Assembly: GCA_004431415.1 (NCBI GenBank)
Contig: QPMI01000495.1
Coordinates: 188,147-252,146, forward strand
Direction of reading: 5' to 3'
Length of the DNA: 64,000 nt
Origin: Cyanophora paradoxa CCMP329
Taxonomy: Eukaryota > Plantae > Glaucophyta
The position numbers were made by a program, and so were the translations under genes. How positions within the stretch are numbered: position 1 is the first letter of the stretch; each line of letters begins with the position of its first letter. The notes below the pieces were generated by a model. It searched no databases, was not told the DNA's origin, and was given only the letters and a program-made list of their open reading frames with translations. Shown here in pieces: positions 25,129-64,000 of the stretch.

Positions 25129-26865
25129 CCCCGCCGCCCCCGCCACCCCCGCCCCCGCCGGCGCCGGGCCGAACGCTCTGCGCCCGTTCTCTCTTTTGCC
25201 CTCCTCGCGCCCTCGCCCTCGCGGCGCGCGTGACCGGCCGCGATGCAGAGTGTGAGATATCGACGCATGTACGGAAGTGAAATGTAAAGCAGTGGGAGAA
25301 ACTTCGCGGCCAGCTCGAGCGTCGTTGGTATTGCTACTGGCCACCGGAACAAGAGATCCGGAGCTCGGCCCCTATAAAGCTAGAGATTATCGTTAACGTT
25401 CCTTTCCCCCCCCCCCCCCCCCCCCCCATCCCCTCCGAATCCCCATCCACCCCCATGCATGCGCCGCGGTGCCAATTTGATCCAGTCCAGTCCAGGGACT
25501 CTTCGAATATCAATTCGAATTGAGGCCCTGATAGAATGTTCAATTAATATTACGAATACTATCTTAGCTGACTCAGCGACATATAGAAATACAGATAGCC
25601 TAGTAGGCCATATATACATATATAGCTACATGAATTCGAAAGCTAAATATTAATAGATATCGATGTTTCAGAATGTCGTAGCCTTTCAATGAAGAGAATT
25701 CGAATTTGAAGCACCGTACGCGTGGCACGCCTAGATCAGCGATTTCCGCTGGTCCCACTGAAGCTATCTGCAGCTTATCATCAGATGAGATGTAGAGCTC
25801 CAAAGCGACAGCCTGGAAACGAAAGTCTAGTGCTACGGTGGCCATATAGCTATGTGCATAAAGGCGAGATTAGGGGCTGCTGCCTAGCCTACTTAAACGA
25901 CGCAACTCCTATATATCGTATTTTACGGATCACTCGGATTCGACCTCCATCCGATGATCGAACTGGAACCATCGACTCCCATGGCCACGACAGCGACCTA
26001 GGGCCTATGAACAAAATCCAAAAGCCGCAAAATAGCACGAGTCCAGCGTCACGGCACGTGAACGGGGGCTCGGAGAGCGAAATTGAAAGCACTCGGATTT
26101 GAAACGCGCGATGCCCACGTGTCCTAGACTCCTAGCTGCACAATCCACGCAGGTGCTTGGTTCGGAAGGCCGGCATGTACACGCATGCGAAACGGAACAA
26201 TGGACGTCAGAGTCCACCGAAAAAACTAGGAGAAGCAGGGCATAATAATGCCCGATCCGGATGCAACCGAGAATAAAATAGGCACGCTATAATACACTGA
26301 TTCAGTCGGCTGTAATACACTGTTGCGTTACTACTGGACTCCAGGAGGTGAAAACAAAGCAGCGAACAACCAAGCAACTGGTTATAGTACTGCAGCGCAT
26401 AAATATGCAAATGTGATTCTGGTGAGATCAAGAGGATCGAAAACACATAGACAATGCCCGCGTTTTATCCCTCGGCTAAGTTTAATTATTATTTGTTTAT
26501 ATTTTACCTATATTTCTTGCATATTTAACAAGATCCGTGCTCCTGCGGAGCACTAAGTACGGCGAAGCCTCGCGGCCGCCCTCGCGCGCGCACGGCTGTC
26601 ACAGTAGGCGTAGCGCACTGCAGCTGGCCAGCGGCCCGGCCGAACAGCTGGTTGGCTGGAAGCTGGCGGCCAGAGGCCTGGCTGGCCAGCTAGAGAGGAA
26701 TGTAATTAATTAGGAGAAGGAATTAATAATTAGGGGAAGAGTTGGACTGGCTTGCTTTTAACAGGTAAAGCATATTGAGAGGAGAATAAATATATAATAT
26801 TTGAGGCCCGGGAGGGGCGAGGTTCTCGCGATCGCAGCCAGGCGCATGCACAGAGCTTGCGAATC

Positions 26866-29210
26866 GCTTAAAAAGAAACTCGAATGCATATAGTATCAAT
26901 GTGCAGGGTTGCGGAGGCGAGGGCGCGAGGAAAAACCTGCAGGTCCATGCAGGATCGAATTTTCGGGGTCGGCTGGGTTCTCGCGCCCTGTCGCGCCCTT
27001 GGAGCTTGCGCTACGCTTTGAAAAGCTCTCAAATGAATATTGTAGCGATGCCCATGCATGAGGATGCGAGGGCGCGCGGAAAGCTGTGCAGGTCCGTGAA
27101 GGATCGAATTTTCGGGGTCGGCTGGGTCCCCGCGGCCCGGCGCATCTGTAAAGCGTGCGGAATGCTTTGTCTACATCTCAAATGCGTATGCTATTGTTCC
27201 GCGCATGCGCCGCGGCGTGGGCGCGCGGAAAGATGTCCGGGTCCGTGCAGGATCGAATTTTTGCCGTCGGCTGGGTTCTCGTGCTCTTTCGTGTCTTCGA
27301 AGCTTGTGGAAGGCTTTGATAAAATCTCAAATGAATATTGTGGCGATGCGCATGCGCGAGAATGCGAGGGCGCGCGGAAAGATGTTCAGGTCCGTACAGG
27401 ATCGAATTTTCGGGGTCGGCTGGGTCCTCGCGGCCTGGTGCATTTAGAGACCGTGCGGAAGTCTTCTTCTACATCTTAAATGCTTATGCTATTGTTCCGC
27501 GCATGCGCCGCAGCGTGGGCGCGCGGAAAGATGGCCGGGCCCGTGCAGGATCGAATTTTTGCCGTCGGCTGGGTTCTCGTGCTCTTTCGCGTCTTCGAAG
27601 TCTGTGGAAGGCTTTGATAAAATCTCAACTGAATATTGTGGCGATGCGCATGCGCGAGGACGCGAGGGCGCGCGGAAAGATGTGCAGGTCCGTGAAGGAT
27701 CGAATTTTCGGGGTCGGCTGGGTCCCCGCGGGGTCTGTAGAGGATCGAATTTTCGGGGTGGGCTGGGTCCCCGCGGCCCCGCGCATCGGCAAAGCGTGCG
27801 GAAGGCTTTGTCTACATCTCAGATGCTTATGCTATTGTTCCGCGCATGCGCCGCGCGTGGGCGCGCGGAAAGATGTCCGGGGCTGTGCAGGATCGAATTT
27901 TTGCCGTCGCGCGATCGGGTACCTTCCTGCGCTGTTCGGCATCCGAAAAGCGGATTTCGGGGGTGCGCAGGCCCTGCTATGTCTATGCGCGCCAGTGCGC
28001 ATCGATTGCGCGCGTCGCGGACCGGGCCGGACCGGCTGGATCAAATTTTCGGCGGAGTCTTCGCACTGGAGTGTCGAGGGCGCCCGAAATCGAGCTTGCG
28101 GCGATGCGCTCGCCCTCGCGCGGCATTCTGTATCGTTCTGGGGCGTCCCTGGCGCGATTTCGTCGCGGGACCGGGCGGGACCGGGTTCCACGTTCTGACT
28201 TGGACTGCATTTGTCGGAGGTTAAGTACCGGAATTGATTCAGAGGGAAATTCGATTTTCGCGGGACGCCTACGGGAGAGCGGTCGTCTTAGGGGAGCCAC
28301 GACGCTAAAAATGGATGTAGAGAGGTTTGTGGGGGTTCGGGTGGGTGTGTTACCAGCAGCAATCGCGTCCGTGTCGAGGCAGAATTAATAATTCTGGCTC
28401 GAGGGAGTGCGACCAAGAGCTATGCGATACAGGCGCGATGCGGAGGGCGGTCAAGACGTGCCGGAGATTCTCAAGTGCTGGTACATGCCTGCGGGGCCGC
28501 GCTTCTGCGAGGGCGCGCGGAAAGACGTGCAGGTCCGTCCAGGATCGAATTTTCGGGGTCGGCTGGGTCCTCGCGGCCCGGCACATCCGTAAACTGTGCG
28601 GAAGTCTTCTTCTACATCTTAAATGCTTATGCTATCGTTCCGCGCGTGCGCCGCGGCGTGGGCGCGCGGAAAGATGTCCGGGGCCGTGTGGGATCGAATT
28701 TTTGCCGTCGGGTACCTTCCTGCGCTGTTCCGGCTCCGAAAAGCGGATTTCGGGGGTGCGCAGGCCGTGCTATGTCTATACGCGCCAGTACGCATCGATT
28801 GCGCGCGTCGCGGGACCGGCCGGAACCGGGAGGATCAAATTTCGGCGTACTGTTCGGACTGCAGCGTCGAGGGCGCCCGAAATCGAGCTTGCGGCGATGC
28901 GCTCGCCCTCGCGCGGCATTCTGTATCGTTCTGGGGCGTCCCTGGCGCGATTTCGTCGCGGGACCGGGCGGGACCGGGTTCCACGTGCACGTTCTGACTT
29001 GGACTGCATTTGTCGGAGGTTAAGTAACGGAATTGATCCAGAGGGAAATTCGAAATTCGCGCGACGTGCACGGGAGAGCGGTCGTCTTAGGGGAGCCAGG
29101 ACGCTAAAAATGGATCTAGAGGGGTCTGTGGGGGTTCGGGCAGCTGTGTAATGTCCATCAATCGCGTCTGTGTCGAGGCAGAATTAATAATTCTGTCTCG
29201 AGGGAATGTG
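26866..29210. repeat. 149-bp tandem satellite (alternating A/B dimer) plus an approximately 790-bp higher-order duplication
   Basis: AGGATCGAATTT recurs at 26951, 27100, 27249, 27398, 27547 and 27696 (exact 149-bp spacing), then at 27742, 27889 and 28541. The block starting GGTACCTTCCTGCGCTGTTC recurs at about 27918 and 28711. Confidence 0.9.
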
Positions 29211-29379
29211 ACACGGAAATTATTTGGCACGGGGGATCTTGAGTGGAAAAAAAGGTTAAAAAAGGAATTTCGGTCGGCGGTTTTTGGGTTTGAGAAAGAG
29301 GCTTCGCCTGACGTTAATTTATGTGTAATTTATCCTTTATTCTTGTCTTTTATGTGCGTATTTTATATAAATTACTAAC

Positions 29380-29790: not shown

Positions 29791-29990
29791 AAATTACTAA
29801 CGTATCCCTTACTGAAACTTAATTTATTCGTATCTCCGATGTAATTTACCTCTATCTCTCGTAATCATTTGTATTTGAGGTGGATTTTAAACTAAGATAA
29901 ATTATATCACGCCTCCTGATAAAACGCGGGCATTGTCTATGTGTGATATTACGCATTATCGTGTATAATGATATGGAAATAATATGTGTA

Positions 29991-30401
29991 CAAGCAGGGG
30001 GGCAAGCCCCCCCGCACCCCCCCATTAACTGATGATCGATATCATGACCGTCGGACATAGCTATAGCGATCGCACGCGAATTCGAAAGAAACTTATATAT
30101 AATTACACGCAGAAATGAATTTTTTCGCGATCTGGAATTTGAAGCATGTATACGTAGATCTAGATCTGCAGCTGAACTTCAATCCAATCGAGAAACGCGC
30201 AGCGTTGACGTCAGCGCCATACGCGTCGCGTCGGCCGCGCCGACCTCGATCTAGACTCTCAGATCTTGAGCTTCGGAAGCGGAGCTATACGATCTAGCGA
30301 TAGATCGGAACTGTTACAATTAGCTATTATATATTTCGAATCTTGCGCAGTTTGCCAGAACGACGGACGTTTTCAGGACAACTAGAATTCGAATAATCTT
30401 C
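29991..30401 (-). mobile_element. Helitron-like 3' terminus, copy 1
   Basis: The minus strand ends in a GC hairpin (GGGGGCTTGCCCCC) followed by TGCTTG|T. It shares a 70-bp end and a GACGTTTTCAGGACAA...GAATAATCTTC block with 32503-32631. Confidence 0.5.
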
Positions 30402-31969: not shown

Positions 31970-32502
31970 AATGCTCCAGGTGATGGAGCCGAACTTGCCG
32001 GTGAGCGGTTCAATGGTCGGTTTATCTTCTCTGTTCTTGTTGCTGATCTTCCCTTTTCCATCGGTGAAATGCTGGAAATTATAAATGCTATCCATCATAA
32101 TGGAAGATTAATTGGAAATTCACCCACTTATTCTGATATGCGGGGTGTCGGTTATTTCAGGGATAAACCTCATCAAATAGTCGTTAGACATGTCGATGAT
32201 CGGTTTTACATTGCGAAAGCCATCGAGCCTATGGGAAATATTGAATTCCTTGTTAGACAACTCCGTTATGAGGAAACAGAGGATGCTTATGTAGAAATTC
32301 TCGATTTCTGTCAACATGTTCGATGCACTCAATATAAGGTATCTGATGTCATGGATGTAATTGTAAGAGATTACGGTAATCAGATGCAACCACGTTATTA
32401 TTTTAAAGTAAATCGTGATCTCTCGGTTTATCATCGCAAGTTTGAAGGGCATAACTTAAAGTTAACTACCCGTGCATCGGTTCGTAAATTCTTAAAAGCC
32501 AA
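31970..32502 (+). pseudogene. AT-rich intronless ORF fragment, probably of viral origin; truncated at both ends
   Basis: About 175 open codons with AT-rich codon usage unlike the host genes. The 5' end abuts GC-rich element DNA and the 3' end is cut by the Helitron-like terminus. Confidence 0.45.
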
Positions 32503-32631
32503 CAAGCAGGGGGGCAAGCCCCCCCGCACCCCCCCATTTACTGATGACCATGCCATGATGACTGTCGGACATGCAGGAAGAAAGCAATTTACATGCAGAC
32601 GTTTTCAGGACAAATTATAAGAATAATCTTC
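32503..32631 (-). mobile_element. Helitron-like 3' terminus, copy 2
   Basis: CAAGCAGGGGGGCAAGCCCCCCCGCACCCCCCCATT.ACTGATGA...ATGAC.GTCGGACAT is shared with 29991-30058. Confidence 0.5.
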
Positions 32632-34528: not shown

Positions 34529-34648
34529 TCAATACCTAACGCTAAAAACTCCAACTCAAATGAATTATCGATACCGTTCATATCAACAAGATCACCGTAA
34601 TAATCGCAAAACTCTACGGTTAACTCATTAATCACTAAATTACGATCG
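34525..34648 (-). pseudogene. C-terminus of a penton/minor capsid protein (Polinton-like virus/NCLDV type)
   Basis: The minus strand translates as DRNLVINELTVEFCDYYGDLVDMNGIDNSFELEFLALGID*, matching the I..L.V...D.YG.LVD.NG.D.SF.LEF end motif of single-jelly-roll pentons. Confidence 0.72.
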
Positions 34649-35167: not shown

Positions 35168-35296
35168 ATCTTCACTGCTTCGCGCGAAAGAAGACTGAAG
35201 GTTGTACCCCTAACAATCATTATATAGAATCAAGGCTGCTTACGGAGTGGCAGGCATACAAAGTCATATGCTACGCGTTCGCTCGCATATTCAGTA
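35168..35296 (-). repeat. Internal direct repeat A2 of YR element 1
   Basis: Identical to 37252-37380. Confidence 0.95.
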
Positions 35297-36117
35297 GTAT
35301 GCCTGCCACAAGCAGCCTTGCTTCTAAGCAATTCTAAGCCAAGTCTGATCATGAAGTTTTTAATAGTGAGCGTGTCACAGGTACGAATTTGTCACAACAC
35401 CTGACGTTCACCTCCACGGTGGATGCGCGAAGTTCTTGAATGAAGGCACATCACAGCATGCACAGCACACACATATGGACTCATGCAAGTACACAACTTG
35501 TTCTCTTGAATGCTTCAAAACTTGTCCAGCATGCACACCTCTGGATGAATGCGCCAACCTGCGGAACAGAATAGAAAATTGGGAGACACACCTGGATACC
35601 AAGAGATGATTTCCTCCACACCTGCGATACCAAATGATTAGATCTGAGCACCCAGCGCGCGATAGCGACACACGAGATGGCCGTTGCTGGCCAGGAACTC
35701 GGCAACTCGACCGCAGCCTGATGTGACCTGGGACGAGAAGAGGTCAGGCTGTTGGGGATTGGCTGGGGCTCGCACCAGGTTGGAGTCATCCAGGTGGCAC
35801 TTATGGCCCACAAAGTTGTGATGCTCAAAGCTTATGCAAAATTCGTAGTTACAAGGCCTTGTAGACTATGGCAAATTTGAAACGATCACAAGGTCATGCA
35901 CATTGCAATTGCCAAGCTAGTGTTTACCACAGACCCATCACCACAAATGCAATGCAAGCTCAAACACACATAAGAAAGCCCAGATTTATTCCTTCATGGC
36001 ACACACACAGCACAGCACAGCTACGAGCACATGCACATGCCAAGTCTGGGGCCACACGAAAACGAAAAAACCTAGCACTCTACAGCTGCGCCCGAAAGGC
36101 TGGGCACAGGAAGCCGC

Positions 36118-37253
36118 CTACTTCTTCTCGCGCCAATCCGGGCGCGGCGGGTTGGTGCAATCCTTCACATGGTGGCCGTGCTGGTTGCACCTAAAGCAAG
36201 CGCCGCCGTTCCGCTGGGCGGTGGGCGCCTGCTCGCGTTCGACGCGCTGCCGCTGCGGGGGCCGATAGCTAGACGGCTGGCGCTCAGCTGGTGCATACGA
36301 ATTACCGGCGCCGACGCCAGCCACACGAAGCGCGTACGCCATCGACGCGGTCTGCGCGCGGTGCTCCTCCGGCACAGCTGCGAGCGCCTCGGCTGTCTTA
36401 TCGCCGCCTTTGTCGCGGATATCTATCTTCTTCTTAAGCTCCTCGAGCTGCTTCAAAGACGCTTTGAGGGTTGCTGCACAGGCGACACACGAGAGGAGCC
36501 CCTTGAGCTGGAAACGCAGCTGTATCAGCTGGAACGCAAACTCCCGAAGCCAGGTATTCTTAAGCTGCATTGCTTCATGCTGTTCGCGCTGCTGCTCCTG
36601 AGCGATTTGATGCTGGTGCTCACGGATGGACTCTACCCCTCGGTCTATGCCTTGCTGAATCTGCTTCTTAATGTACTCATTAAGCTCACCGGCAGGGCTG
36701 TTGTGGCGTTGACGACGGGAACCGGGCCGCGGCGGTGCCGAGTGTGCCGGCTGGGTCCTGGCTGGTCGGGAACCGGCACCTCGAGATTCGGGAACATCTG
36801 TGCGGCAAGAGCTTCCTCTCGTGTGGCTGCACCGCCGAACTGCTCACGACGCTGCACGCCGGCAATCACATCCTCCTCGTCCTCGGAAAATGGCTCCGGA
36901 TCCGGAACGCCGTCACTGGTGCGGTTTTCGACTGCTGGGGCGGCTGGCGCCTTGCGCTTGTTGCTGGTTGACTGACGGCCACTTGGCGTTGGAGTAGGCG
37001 CCGAACCGTTGTCCTCGCCGCCGGAGTCCGCCGCCTCGGTCACACGCGTGGAACGGCGAGCTCGTGGCTGGGCGGATGCGGTCGGCCGCGGACGGGCTGT
37101 CTTGCGGGAGCCCGTTGCGGAAGACTTGCCCTTCTTGTTCGACCCCGCCTCCGCGCAGGCCGCCAAGAGGCTGAAAACGACGACGACGAGAACAAGTGTG
37201 ACCACCAGAGGGGCCCAGCTAGGGCCCCTCCCACGACGAGCCACGCGACACAT
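36118..37253 (-). CDS. Gag-like protein of YR element 1 (signal-peptide-like N-terminus, one frameshift near 36,700)
   Basis: MCRVARRGRGPSWAPLVVTLVLVVVVFSLLAACAEA...; LEELKKKIDIRDKGG; zinc knuckle CFRCNQHGHHVKDC; stop at 36118. Confidence 0.8.
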
Positions 37254-37380
37254 CTTCACTGCTTCGCGCGAAAGAAGACTGAAGGTTGTACCCCTAACAA
37301 TCATTATATAGAATCAAGGCTGCTTACGGAGTGGCAGGCATACAAAGTCATATGCTACGCGTTCGCTCGCATATTCAGTA
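37252..37380 (-). repeat. Terminal direct repeat A1 of YR element 1
   Basis: Begins at the junction with the penton fragment and ends in the gag ATG. Confidence 0.95.
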
Positions 37381-37556
37381 TTATCGATACCGTTCATATC
37401 AACAAGATCACCGTAATAATCGCAAAACTCTACGGTTAACTCATTAATCACTAAATTACGATCGTTTATTTTTATGTATTCTCCATGCTCTCCGCTATGG
37501 TATACATACTTTCCGATGTCCTGACTTAATTGTAAACGCAATATTGCGCCTTGAGT
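37381..37556 (-). pseudogene. Upstream part of the same penton/minor capsid gene, interrupted by YR element 1
   Basis: AILRLQLSQDIGKYVYHSGEHGEYIKINDRNLVINELTVEFCDYYGDLVDMNGIDN, then A1. Bases 37381-37464 are identical to 34565-34648. Confidence 0.72.
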
Positions 37557-38368: not shown

Positions 38369-38599
38369 ATAGTTGTTATACGAGGAACGTAGTATAACGT
38401 ACTTCGGACAGCGTGAATAATGTATATTGTTACATAAATTTCGCACTCTTTGTTGCTTCGCAACAAGTACTTCTTGGGTACTTGTTGCACCTGCAACAAG
38501 TCCTACGAGCTTCCTAAGAGCTGCAGCAGTGAGCTATCGCTGCAGCTGCTGCAGCTTCTCTTCAGAGTTGCTTGATAGCAGCTTCGCTTCTTGCTCCCA
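38369..38599 (+). repeat. Terminal direct repeat A1 of YR element 2
   Basis: Matches 60880-61110 except for two 1-bp indels. Ends at the A of the gag ATG. Confidence 0.95.
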
Positions 38600-39660
38600 T
38601 GGCAGCCCTAGCGCGCCCCCGCGGGCGCCTCCAGCTCTCCCGTTTCGTCCTAATTGTGTGTCTCCTTGCGCTCCTCGTTTGCCCGGTCGCAAATGGCGCC
38701 CGGGGTGCGAAGAGAGCCAAAACCGCGACTCCCTCTCCCAATCCGCCCGATCCGACTGTGGCGCCCTCTGCTGGCCCCAGTAGCCCACCCCCTGTTCCTC
38801 CAACGCCCACCCCTGAGGCGCCGGCCCCGGAGCCCGGCCCGCCAGTTATCACTCCTTCAGGCTCGAATATTTGCATCGGAACGCATGGCCCAACAGTGCC
38901 AACCCCATCCCAGCAGATTGCAGACCAAACCGTAGAGGCGTTCAATCAGCGTTTCGCAGCCATTGAACATTACCTCGGCGAAGTGATTGCAGCTCGTACC
39001 ATAGGTACTGCCACCGCCAATCCAGCCCCGATTCCAACTCCGCCCATTTCGTCGGTCCCACTTGTCGATTTGACATCGAACAATGGCGGTGAAGGATCAT
39101 CTTCGGGCAACACTGCGCGTGAGCGTGCTGCACGTACACGTGAGCCCCTTACTGAGCGCGAACGCCAACGTTTCCACTATAATATTACCCGTTGGAATAA
39201 CCCTCTAAACAAAGAATTTGCTTTGGACACTCTCGATAATATAGCGTTAGCCGAGGCCCGTGATTATTCTGCTCTTTATATCGCACTTAGAGACCAACTC
39301 AAAAAGATCCAACGCATCAATCAGCTAGGCCTTGATCGTGCTCTTAGACTGCAAAATGTAAACCAGGCTACTGATGATTTTCAGGAGCGCCAACTTTTGT
39401 TAACTGAACAAATGTATCAGCAGCAGTTGCAGCAGTTTACGCAGAATACTGTCACAGGCATGCCGTATGGTCGCTCACAGAATTTCGCTGCTCGCCCTCC
39501 CGGCCCTCGTCTGGCGGCCTCTGGCCCTACTCGCCCACGGGCTTGCTATCATTGTCACGATCCATCCCATATGCGTAATGTCTGTCCTGCTTTCCGTGCA
39601 GCTTGCCAGAACTGCCCTCCTGGCACTCGCCCGACTCCTCTGCCGACTCCAAACTCGTAA
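38599..39660 (+). CDS. Gag-like protein of YR element 2 (signal-peptide-like N-terminus)
   Basis: MAALARPRGRLQLSRFVLIVCLLALLVCPVANGA...; Pro-rich linker; WNNPLNKEFALDTL...LRDQLKKIQRINQLG; knuckle CYHCHDPSHMRNVC. Intact ORF. Confidence 0.85.
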   Translation: MAALARPRGRLQLSRFVLIVCLLALLVCPVANGARGAKRAKTATPSPNPPDPTVAPSAGPSSPPPVPPTPTPEAPAPEPGPPVITPSGSNICIGTHGPTVPTPSQQIADQTVEAFNQRFAAIEHYLGEVIAARTIGTATANPAPIPTPPISSVPLVDLTSNNGGEGSSSGNTARERAARTREPLTERERQRFHYNITRWNNPLNKEFALDTLDNIALAEARDYSALYIALRDQLKKIQRINQLGLDRALRLQNVNQATDDFQERQLLLTEQMYQQQLQQFTQNTVTGMPYGRSQNFAARPPGPRLAASGPTRPRACYHCHDPSHMRNVCPAFRAACQNCPPGTRPTPLPTPNS

Positions 39661-60424: not shown

Positions 60425-60879
60425 ACATATTCATACATGTCGCAGCTCTGCCCTTGTGGCATCTGCATGTCTTGTTTTTTGCTTTGAAAATCGCTATGGC
60501 GTGCACTTACATCGACATTATTGATTGCAAATTGTCAGGACAGCTCTGCCTCGCGTGGCATTGTTGCTGTATTTCTTTCAGTGCACGGCACTAGTGCATA
60601 CTCCTCGCCGGAGATGGAGATTCGGTCGCCATTTTCTTTCCCTTGCGCAGTTCAAGCATCTGGAGTTCAGGCACGCCTCCCCCATAAATCGCTCGTGCAC
60701 TGACTGGCGACCGAACGCATCGATGGCATTATACATACGCATTTTACATATATGTGTGCTTCTGTGTGCCGTTAGAGCCTTGCACTCGTCTGCAGGCTCT
60801 CGGCCTTCGCTCTTTTGCTCTTCATGGCAATTGTACAAGTAGTACCTCAATTGCAATATACGAAATGAGCGCTGTCCGA

Positions 60880-61110
60880 ATAGTTGTTATACGAGGAACG
60901 TAGTATAACGTACTTCGGACAGCGTGAATAATGTATAATTGTTACATAAATTTCGCACTCTTTGTTGCTTCGCAACAAGTACTTCTTGGGTACTTGTTGC
61001 ACCTGCAACAAGTCCTACGAGCTTCCTAAGAGCTGCAGCAGTGAGCTATCGCTGCAGCTGCTGCAGCTTCTCTTCAGATTGCTTGATAGCAGCTTCGCTT
61101 CTTGCTCCCA
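60880..61110 (+). repeat. Internal direct repeat A2 of YR element 2
   Basis: Near-identical to 38369-38599. Confidence 0.95.
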
Positions 61111-61229: not shown

Positions 61230-63132
61230 GTTTTACTGCTCGCTGTCTCGGAAGTGCGGATGCCTTGGCGGCATGGCGTGCAATCGGAACAAGTGATTAC
61301 ATCCTTTCATGGCTTCAGAACGGCTACCCTCTTGCTGGCGTCGAGCATCTGCTCCTAGTGTACATTACAATGCTGGTCAATCTCAGCGCCCTCGTGAGAG
61401 TACTTTCATTCGGGCAGAAATTCAGAAGCTGCTCGGTACCGGCGCTATTCGGGTGGCCCCCAAGCCCCCGAAAATTGTTTGCTCGCTATTTACGGTTCCA
61501 AAGAAGACTGGTGATAAGCTCAGACTGATTTGGGATGGCCGCCCAACAAATCGAGGTCTTCCTCCTGTCCCTTTTCGCTATGAAAATATGCGCGAGGTCA
61601 TCGCCTTGCTGCGACCTGGCTGGTTTATGTTTACTATCGACCTCGAGTCGGGATATCATCATGTACCGGTAGACCCGCAATATTTCTCGTACCTGGGCTT
61701 CCAGTACGATAGTACTTTCTTCGAATACACCGTTTTACCCTTCGGGCTCTCACATGCCCCATATGCATTCACCAAGATCATACGTCAGGTCATTAAATTT
61801 CTCCGCGCACACGGTATTACCGTGGTATCGTATGTAGATGATTTCTGGTTTGCGGCTCCCACGTACCAGGCCGCTGTTAATCTTCGCAATTTCATTCTCG
61901 ATCTTTTTCGCCACCTGCACTTATTCATTAATGAGAAATCGGCCCTTGAGCCTGCACAGCGTGTCGAATTTTTAGGGTTTATTGTAGATTCCACATCTAT
62001 GATGTTTGAGGTCCCTCTGCAGAAGCTTAGTAAGCTTCAGGACCGGCTAAAGGACGCAGCTAAGCGCATCCAGTCGTGCCAGGCTAGAGGCGTGCAATTT
62101 CAGATGTCAGCTCGTACACTCGCTTCGATTGTCGGTGTGCTTATGTCAATGGCCTTAGCTATTGCACCCGCTCGCATTCATACTCGATCCATTTATCGCA
62201 ACATTGATATTACCCAGCGACAATTTCGGTGGAATGCCCCGGCGGTGGTATCGCCGGAGGCCCAGGAGGAGCTTCTGTGGTGGCATGCAAATCTCGCCCG
62301 CTATAATGGGCGGTGTGCCATCCGGCCAGAGCGAATTTTCGTTGTTACGACGGATGCCAGCAAGATCGGTCTTGGTGGTTTTGTCACCACCGAGGTTGGC
62401 GATATCTCATTCCAACAACAGTGGACTCCTGCAGAGTCGGCCCAGACGCCTGCATGGCGTGAGATGACCGCCATTATTCGTGCTCTGCATCATTTCAGTC
62501 CTTACCTGCAGCACGTTAATTTACTAGTTCGCTCAGATAACACAAATGCAGTGCAGTACATTCTTAATGGTGGCGGTCGTAGCCCCGAGCTTACATTAAT
62601 CGCCAAGGAAATTTGGAATTTCGCCTTGCAAAATTGTGCCTTCATGGATGCTGAGTGGATACCTGGAGAAACCAATAATTTCGCCGATTATCTTAGTCGC
62701 TGGTTTGCCCCTGCTGACTATCAGCTTTCCGATGCTGTTTTCCGTCGCATTGTTAACAGATATGGCTTGCCTGATGTCGATCGAATGGCATTAGCTTCCT
62801 CTGCACGTGTCCCTCGCTATAATAGCATTGATCCTTTTGACCGCCTTGCAGAGGCAGTAGACTGCTTCACTGTTGATTGGTCTCGTGATTTTAATTATGT
62901 TTTCCCCGACCCTGCAGTCCTACTGCGGGTGGTTCGTCATGCTCAAGCTTGTCGAGCTCGGATGATTGTTGTAGTACCCGAATGGCCCTCACAGCCATGG
63001 TGGCCTATCTTGCAGGCTGCAGCTGTGGAGCCCCCTCTGCATCTTGGTCGGGGCCACACAGTATGCCTTTTCGGTCCAACTCGTGCTGCTCTTCCTGAGT
63101 GGCTGCTCCTCGCTTTTCTAGTTCAGTTTTAG
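61230..63132 (+). CDS. DIRS-type RT / RNase H / adenine-methyltransferase-like polyprotein (one frameshift near 61,350)
   Basis: AWRAIGTSDYILSWLQNGYPL; DLESGYHH; LPFGLSHAPYAFTK; YVDD. RNase H: TTDAS, WREMTA, RSDN, NNFADYLSR. MT-like: DVDRMA...FTVDWSRDFNYVFPDP...VVVPEWPSQPWWP. Confidence 0.93.
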
Positions 63133-63169: not shown

Positions 63170-64000
63170 ATGCAATCGAGCGCACACCCTCATGCTTCTA
63201 ACCATACCCTGCAGTGGATGCAGCTCGTTGGGCCCACATCTGTGCTCGCATTACGTTCTACGCAAACCAGCATCTTGCCCCATCCACGCGAGATGCATAT
63301 GCAATGTGGGTTGGCCGTTTCGGCAGTTCTGCATTCAGCTGGGTGTTCTACCTTTTCCCGTCGATGCTGAGCTTTTTCTGCAGTTCGTAATGAGTGTGAG
63401 ACCTTGCGGTTTGATACCTCAGTTTTCAGCTCAGTGCTTATTCAGCACGTCCTCACGGCTTGCGCCGAGTCCTAGGCGATGGCCCCACTCGCCAGCGGCC
63501 GTCCTTTCGGTCGAACATATTCGCCGGCTAGCGGTAGCTTCCGATCGTGTTCCATCACAGACCCATCGTCGCTCTATTGCTATGATCACCGTCGGTTTCT
63601 TTGGCCTCCTCCGTCGCTCTGAGATTGTGCAAATTCGGCGGTCTCATTTATCTTTCCGCCCAGATGGCATGGTCCTCCGCGTCCCTCGCTCTAAAAACAG
63701 ATCAGACTCGGATTGGTCACGAGCTTTTATTTCGGCTCTGCCAGGCAACGTGTTATGTCCTGTTTTTCGTCTTCGTGTTTATATAGCCACTCTGCCTCCT
63801 ACTGTGGATGTCGTATTTGGACAGCTTCGCAATCCTAGTGTCGCCCTTTCTCCGGCGTCTGTCGGCTTCGCACTTCAGCAGCTTCTCAACCTCGCTGGTA
63901 TTGACAAATCTGGTTTCGCCACGCACAGCCTGCGCCGCGGTGGGGCCTGTGCTCTTGCAGCTGCTGGTGTTCCCGACGACGTCATTCGCGCCTTCGGACG
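63170..64000 (+). CDS. Tyrosine recombinase (frameshifted, truncated by the window end)
   Basis: GFFGLLRRSE (about 63595-63623), VPRSKTDQ across an indel, LCPV, and THSLRRGGA...IRALGR (63921-64000). Confidence 0.92.

Follow-up and report, generated by a model that had tools for sequence, protein, structure and literature searches.

Tyrosine recombinases cut DNA with a polarity that runs from the arm into the spacer, and the circles of Tn916 and Tn1549 are recombined by such enzymes with little or no homology at the crossover. Folded single strands are also recombined in bacteria: the attC site of integrons consists of a paired box, cut at its top, an unpaired spacer of 5-6 nt, a second box, and a variable apex (PMC5027507), and a single strand is exchanged to give a junction that is resolved by replication (PMC3458562). 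The fold of CTX phage is used by XerCD, which has no I2 helix, and in a 2016 paper CTX integration was considered to be the only reaction resembling the recombination of integron cassettes (PMC4792948). How retrotransposons of the DIRS order integrate has been a question since the circle model of 1985; in the published model for DIRS1-like elements the circle is made duplex before integration, and for DIRS-1 the cDNA is single-stranded, the circle junction could not be amplified, and the specificity of the tyrosine recombinase (YR) has yet to be tested (PMC7192593).

The window analyzed here, a stretch of 64,000 nucleotides from Cyanophora paradoxa CCMP329, contains two YR elements, designated elements 1 and 2. 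The layout of element 2 is as follows.

38370-38599, forward strand: repeat A1, the left end of element 2 (self-comparison, public contigs)
38599-39660, forward strand: gag-like ORF with a zinc-knuckle-like C-x2-C-x4-H-x4-C
39909-60435, forward strand: LTR retroelement of 20 kb, between gag and B1 and foreign to element 2
60820-60880, forward strand: repeat B1, 61 bp (loose contig ends at 60820 and 60880; 3' end of L002)
60881-61110, forward strand: repeat A2, 230 bp, equal to A1 by self-comparison
61309-63132, forward strand: RT, RNase H, and methyltransferase-like ORF (Pfam)
63200-64000, forward strand: Cre-like YR, extending past the end of the window

The repeats are direct and follow the order A1...B1A2...B2, with B1A2 between gag and pol; the second copy of B (B2) lies outside the window, and the B repeat and the free right end are known from public contigs. 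The inverted terminal repeats with an ICR that are a trait of DIRS1-like elements are not found in element 2. It encodes RT and RNase H, a YR with the residues R-K-H-R-H/W-Y, and no DDE integrase, and its RT falls outside the DIRS1-like clade in the trees built, one of them a quick tree and with no named PAT reference included. The domain that follows RNase H, of a kind absent from Ngaro and VIPER, is methyltransferase-like: it has no direct Pfam match of its own but matches Dam-like domains of relatives, that of P0201 at 41% identity (E 1e-19). Judged from its sequence, element 2 is a PAT-like, split-repeat YR retrotransposon with its junction between gag and pol. It resembles PAT, TOC, and kangaroo in the arrangement of its split repeats, in encoding gag, RT-RNase H-methyltransferase, and YR, and in having no target duplication, but differs from them in that B1A2 separates gag from pol. 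For the PAT-like family, the literature surveyed, which did not extend to the main reviews, describes no folded site at the junction.

It should be noted that the start of the RT frame and the YR frames of element 2 are broken, the latter by single-base differences that are absent from public contigs, because the window assembly has insertion and deletion errors. Between 60032 and 63693 there are many single-base insertions and deletions relative to all four public runs, and the public contigs have about 62 additional bases at 63371. Repeat A stands before both gag and pol and may be a leader or promoter for each; repeat A2 has three further hairpins at about 60960-61080 (also in A1), one with a folding z score of about -7. 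The 20-kb LTR retroelement has 298-bp LTRs, the left one about 13 bp short at its 3' end, and a TACAT target duplication. It contains very long ORFs without Pfam matches, one of 2021 aa, and tandem repeats of 96-97 bp close to its start.

At the boundary of B1 and A2, the initial annotation had described a stem-bubble-stem hairpin at 60870-60924, and all of its stems, the bubble, and the loop were found at these coordinates.

60870-60880, forward strand: 5' arm of the outer stem, the last 11 bases of repeat B1, with the cut at its 3' end (60880/60881)
60881-60885, forward strand: 5' side of the bubble, where repeat A begins, counterpart of the unpaired spacer
60886-60892, forward strand: 5' arm of the inner stem, its terminal C at +12 from the cut
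60893-60902, forward strand: apex, a GA/GTA internal loop and GAA tip, with a CGTAG motif that includes the next base
60903-60909, forward strand: 3' arm of the inner stem
60910-60913, forward strand: 3' side of the bubble
60914-60924, forward strand: 3' arm of the outer stem, within repeat A, with a partnerless copy at the left end (38403-38413)

The structure has an 11-bp stem, a 5/4-nt bubble, a 7-bp stem, and a 10-nt apex, and its folding energy corresponds to z scores of -5.3 for the forward strand as DNA, -6.8 for the reverse strand, and -6.1 as RNA; 0 of 200 shuffles fold equally well, and an equally good fold occurs in only 1 of the 252 other 70-nt windows of element 2. The pairing bridges two separate repeats, B and A, and the left ends of elements 1 and 2, which lack the 5' outer arm, give no such signal (z about -0.6), indicating that the full fold is present only where repeat B meets repeat A. 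Sheared G.A pairs are possible in the GA/GTA apex loop. The stems contain no extrahelical bases; the two or three that attC has at fixed places may have a counterpart in a T that bulges from the GA/GTA loop. An Rfam scan of the hairpin gave no match at the gathering score.

The same shape had been reported for element 1 and is present there on the sense strand, with a z score of -6.8.

35247-35309, reverse strand: junction hairpin of element 1, cut at 35297/35296, with the geometry of that of element 2
37252-37380, reverse strand: repeat A1 of element 1, with the left end at 37380 and one base common with the target
34564-34648, no strand assigned: 85-bp copy of the target flank (equal to 37380-37464), where the right end of element 1 is broken

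The inner stem of each element closes with a C-G pair located 12 nt behind the cut, next to which a G.A pair is possible. The view that structure is conserved here without sequence is correct for the arms, which differ, but not for the apices, both of which read C-GAG...GAAC...GTA-G. Because the families show kinship (61% identity across 71 residues of RT) and have this apex motif in common, elements 1 and 2 are not independent witnesses, and the argument that two families suffice to indicate a functional folded site is weak when taken alone. A functional folded site is nevertheless backed by the recurrence of the fold at distant PAT-like and DIRS1-like junctions described below, where the outer stem is cut at its top or close to it. 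As to the function that had been proposed, recombination or priming, the former is the best reading, on grounds of geometry and analogy, and the latter is weaker: DIRS1-like elements have the inner stem-loop at their right end and split-repeat elements have it at their left, so that its position goes with the cut rather than with the transcript's 3' end.

The element terminus had been mapped to the boundary of the outer stem and the bubble on the 5' arm. This boundary is exactly right, but the base was misplaced by one, the terminus being 38370 (equivalent to 60881) rather than 38369 (60880). A contig from a public run contains repeat B up to and including 60880, followed by unrelated flank, and represents the right end; of the three runs listed, two have contigs of repeat A that open at 60881 and one has them open at 60880. 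The crossover is therefore at 60880/60881, between outer stem and bubble. The public contigs also show a second left flank. The cut is preceded by GAA in element 2 and TAC in element 1, with T following in each, and several junctions read AA directly before it. The exact 85-bp flank duplication preserves the empty target site of element 1, which has one base in common with the junction and nothing else of the bubble; no spacer homology is needed. The bases shared by junction and target at the cut number 1 in element 1, and 0 and 2, respectively, in L020, which also has no target duplication, and L024, two complete split-repeat elements from unrelated samples. Spacer homology between the recombination partners is absent apart from these 0-2 bases, and insertion depends on homology little or not at all. 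Among the few ends available, a second class of termini was not seen. A duplex core site would have inverted arms of 11-13 bp around a spacer of 6-8 bp; such arms match at 4 of 11 positions in element 2 (background fraction 0.93) and are above background at only 2 of 10 junctions; element 1 has an above-background duplex inverted repeat (8/11 matches) with four similar arms. A canonical duplex core of the loxP or dif type was rejected as mostly absent: 8 of the 10 junctions, including that of element 2, have no symmetry about the cut.

For comparisons between elements, a strict geometric rule was modeled on the two elements of the window and set down after most of the junctions had been inspected: the outer helix ends at the cut, and the inner helix ends at +11 to +13 in a C-G pair that is followed by G.A. 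L024 (RT identity 32%) conforms to the rule exactly: its 9-bp outer stem is cut at the end or as much as 2 nt earlier, and is followed by one bulged base and an inner stem of 11 bp with its terminal C at +12 and then G.A; this junction is the best-folding of 263 windows (z -7.1). In L020 (RT identity 26%) the junction folds too, but the cut falls 3 nt inside the bubble and the z score of -1.7 is ordinary for its GC content. At L020:6399-6459 the outer stem has tandem GA/GA mismatches, and a C-GAA-G tip at +15 is a variant of the motif. The contigs of the closest relatives (L001, L002, L004, and L017) end at repeats, and in L001 only the 3' half of the hairpin is assembled, with two substitutions in the arms, so that a compensatory pair is not shown within one family. 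Relatives were not found in four scans of viral contigs or by phage tblastn. Elements without mappable ends (L003, L005-L008, L011-L014, L016, L019, L023, L025, and L026) were left out.

In DIRS1-like elements, read on the ICR strand, the AAN junction tops a stem, beyond which come a small bubble and, about 12 nt on, a second stem. Their outer stem is automatic because the termini are inverted; the inner stem is equaled by 25-68 of 2000 loop shuffles in four cases but is not significant in Dictyostelium DIRS-1, where 593 of 2000 shuffles are as good. The junctions of L015, L009, and L010, three copies from two families, satisfy the strict rule, and that of Dictyostelium DIRS-1 and two fish-type junctions in L027 have the stem-bubble-stem form without G.A, AAC being paired with GTT in one of the latter. 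In all, four junctions beyond the strict-rule set fold similarly and miss the rule. A plain DNA alignment of six junctions gave no usable columns, and the arms have no common sequence across families, whereas the non-canonical closing (C-G, G.A) is kept. CGTAG is present near the apex in six elements, compared with a background of 1.4% of 35-nt windows.

A scan with the strict rule identified 11 sites in 495,710 strand-positions, of which 7 are mapped junctions, among them that of an unrelated split-repeat element and those of three DIRS1-like copies; 1 occupies a place in L022 at which a junction would be expected, 200 nt behind the YR gene, and 3 are unexplained. Shuffled sequence gave 11 sites in 991,420 positions, or about 1 in 90,000, a rate that the three unexplained sites approximately match. 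With a loose rule, one strand gave 8 of 10 junctions and the opposite strand 0 of 10; the background was 0.1-1.4% of positions. The sole prediction fixed in advance, for L027, was half borne out, the fold and spacing being present and G.A not. A strand preference derived from folding energy was dropped, as it was not significant relative to each element's own background. The rule doubles as a junction finder for annotation. The L022 site (L022:5324-5366) is a junction-type hairpin with a GCGTAGC cap, a predicted B/A junction.

These observations, considered by analogy with the bacterial systems, suggest with a probability of roughly 0.55 that the junction hairpin is a folded single-strand attachment site cut by the element's own Cre-like YR. 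The junction strand would be unpaired, or extruded as a cruciform, with the outer and inner stems forming two duplex arms around a 5-6 nt spacer. The YR would bind both arms and cut at the 3' end of the outer arm, where the cut is placed because of the arm-into-spacer polarity of tyrosine recombinases; a duplex target would then exchange one strand with it, leaving a junction to be resolved by replication or repair in the host, as for attC and CTX phage. Insertion would part the outer arms, so that the site would be rebuilt at neither end. The polarity would imply use of the plus strand in split-repeat elements and of the first-strand cDNA junction in DIRS1-like elements. One speculation is that the favored strand in each class has its ends rebuilt on the internal junction's minus-strand copy and stays unpaired there; extrusion of a cruciform from a duplex circle is an alternative, equally speculative, account of the polarity. 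No split-repeat element has so far yielded a single-stranded plus strand, which counts against the scheme. The extension to the DIRS order as a whole, PAT-like and DIRS1-like, of a structure-encoded single-stranded attachment site, a Cre-like YR, and one strand exchange with replicative resolution is more tentative, and falls somewhat short of even odds.

The YR of element 2 is Cre-like by profile and by predicted structure, its best match being Cre (E 1e-35, Z 24) as compared with IntI4 (E 5e-6, Z 17.3), and its alignment has no long insertion of the I2 type relative to Cre. Membership of the IntI group was ruled out on both grounds. Since the YR is of this type, element 2 is not an integron and its junction is not an attC site. 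The junction resembles attC in its stem, the 5'-arm cut at the top of the stem, the spacer of about 5-6 nt, the second stem, and the variable apex, and in keeping structure with little sequence. The window elements differ from attC in lacking the RYYYAAC/GTTRRRY consensus and apparently also defined extrahelical bases, and in having a Cre-like recombinase and no attI partner, and they are retroelements of a eukaryote. The presumed mimicry of a duplex core by a folded single strand, and a recombinase without the I2 helix, are features in common with CTX attP and XerCD (PMC4792948); in contrast, the recombinase is the element's own rather than the host's, there is no fixed dif-like target, and the arms are short and close together. 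With DIRS1-like elements, including Dictyostelium DIRS-1, the likeness lies in the fold of the ICR junction and a second stem about 12 nt on, but their outer stem derives from inverted termini and the favored strand is the first-strand cDNA. The integrases of Tn916 and Tn1549 are also tyrosine recombinases that need little or no crossover homology, but act on duplex substrates with a heteroduplex overlap and give two product classes, which were not seen among the few ends here.

The order of the elements and folded-strand recombination in bacteria were both known; the geometry across families is added here. Their combination, a folded strand proposed for DIRS elements, was not found in the literature searched, the main reviews of the field being outside its coverage. 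If correct, the proposal would provide a eukaryotic counterpart of integron and CTX recombination on a different recombinase, adding a self-encoded case beside CTX integration, and would account for insertion without homology or target duplication and for the single-stranded cDNA of DIRS-1. A folded substrate of 55-70 nt with a predicted scissile bond also brings the question within reach of experiments that need only oligonucleotides and a single purified protein, and of the existing Dictyostelium assay.

A different role for the fold, in RNA or first-strand cDNA during reverse transcription, as a priming, pausing, template-switch, or packaging signal in the internal junction copy, comparable to the stem-bulge-stem epsilon of hepadnaviruses, with integration through an ordinary duplex circle, is unlikely. 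The favored polarity in both classes is also that of RNA at the internal copy, where the fold with its 5'-arm cut reads on the sense strand, the RNA folds strongly (z -6.1), and repeat A has further hairpins. No primer of DIRS elements has been identified, and a 3' hairpin of DIRS-1 was put forward as one (PMC7192593, citing Poulter and Goodwin). However, it is the recombinase that makes ends on a continuous junction, and the ends coincide with the stem boundary; the inner stem-loop changes from the right end to the left end between the two classes, and DIRS-1 cDNA synthesis persists after deletion of the ICR (PMC7192593). Moreover, C-GNA-G caps are typical of DNA mini-hairpins: GCGNAGC is one of exceptional stability, and the related GCGAAAGC is far less stable as RNA (PMC13037366).

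Quite unlikely is a model in which the four arms are YR binding sites in duplex DNA, forming two inverted pairs, a double-stranded circle is cut on both strands with tolerance of a mismatched overlap as in Tn916 and Tn1549, and the hairpin is a by-product. The accepted model does assume that the circle is duplex (PMC7192593, PMC3266345), the YR is like Cre, which acts on duplexes, and not like IntI, and the model fits element 1, whose four arms are similar and which has the duplex inverted repeat, but not the rest; the asymmetry of most junctions about the cut, the divergence of arm sequences across families while the C-G, G.A closing is kept, and the single class of termini among the few ends seen are more readily reconciled with the folded attachment site. 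That the hairpin has no function of its own, being a side effect of the origin of the terminal repeats (snap-back copying or descent from inverted termini) or of chance in hairpin-rich repeats, is very unlikely. Hairpins do abound in repeat A, one of them equaling the junction fold in strength, and inverted termini supply the outer stems of DIRS1-like elements at no cost, but neither explains the fixed spacing and closing motif at seven mapped junctions, given the rate in shuffled sequence, or a pairing that joins two separate repeats.

Some further features of these contigs were observed. L024 is a PAT-like element in eukaryote-like DNA with satellites, in a 2.6-Mb contig filed as a Poribacteria genome bin; this is probably host contamination. 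L023, L025, and L026 are likewise in bacterial bins. At L009:3969-4395 and L010:4020-4142, copies of a DIRS1-like family stop a short way past the ICR, and a right inverted repeat was not detected by BLAST; in L009 two DIRS1-like copies lie tail to tail. The complete DIRS1-like element at L015:12846-18190 is 4 kb from genes with bacterial-type domains (heavy-metal ATPase, NikR) in a 516-kb metagenome contig, as could arise from a chimera or a transfer. In the window, element 1 is truncated early in RT, with a precise left end and the right end missing, and its 85-bp target duplication is unusual for a YR element; speculatively, these features fit an aborted plus-strand exchange, and other explanations exist. 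The segment 29300-38370, which received both YR elements, is AT-richer and gene-dense, unlike the host DNA of 75% GC, and could be an integrated virus-like element. A 70-bp repeat is present at 29990-30058 and 32502-32572, and the AT-rich stretch is adjoined at 26832-29212 by an array of 149-bp units with higher-order periods of 298 bp and about 795 bp.
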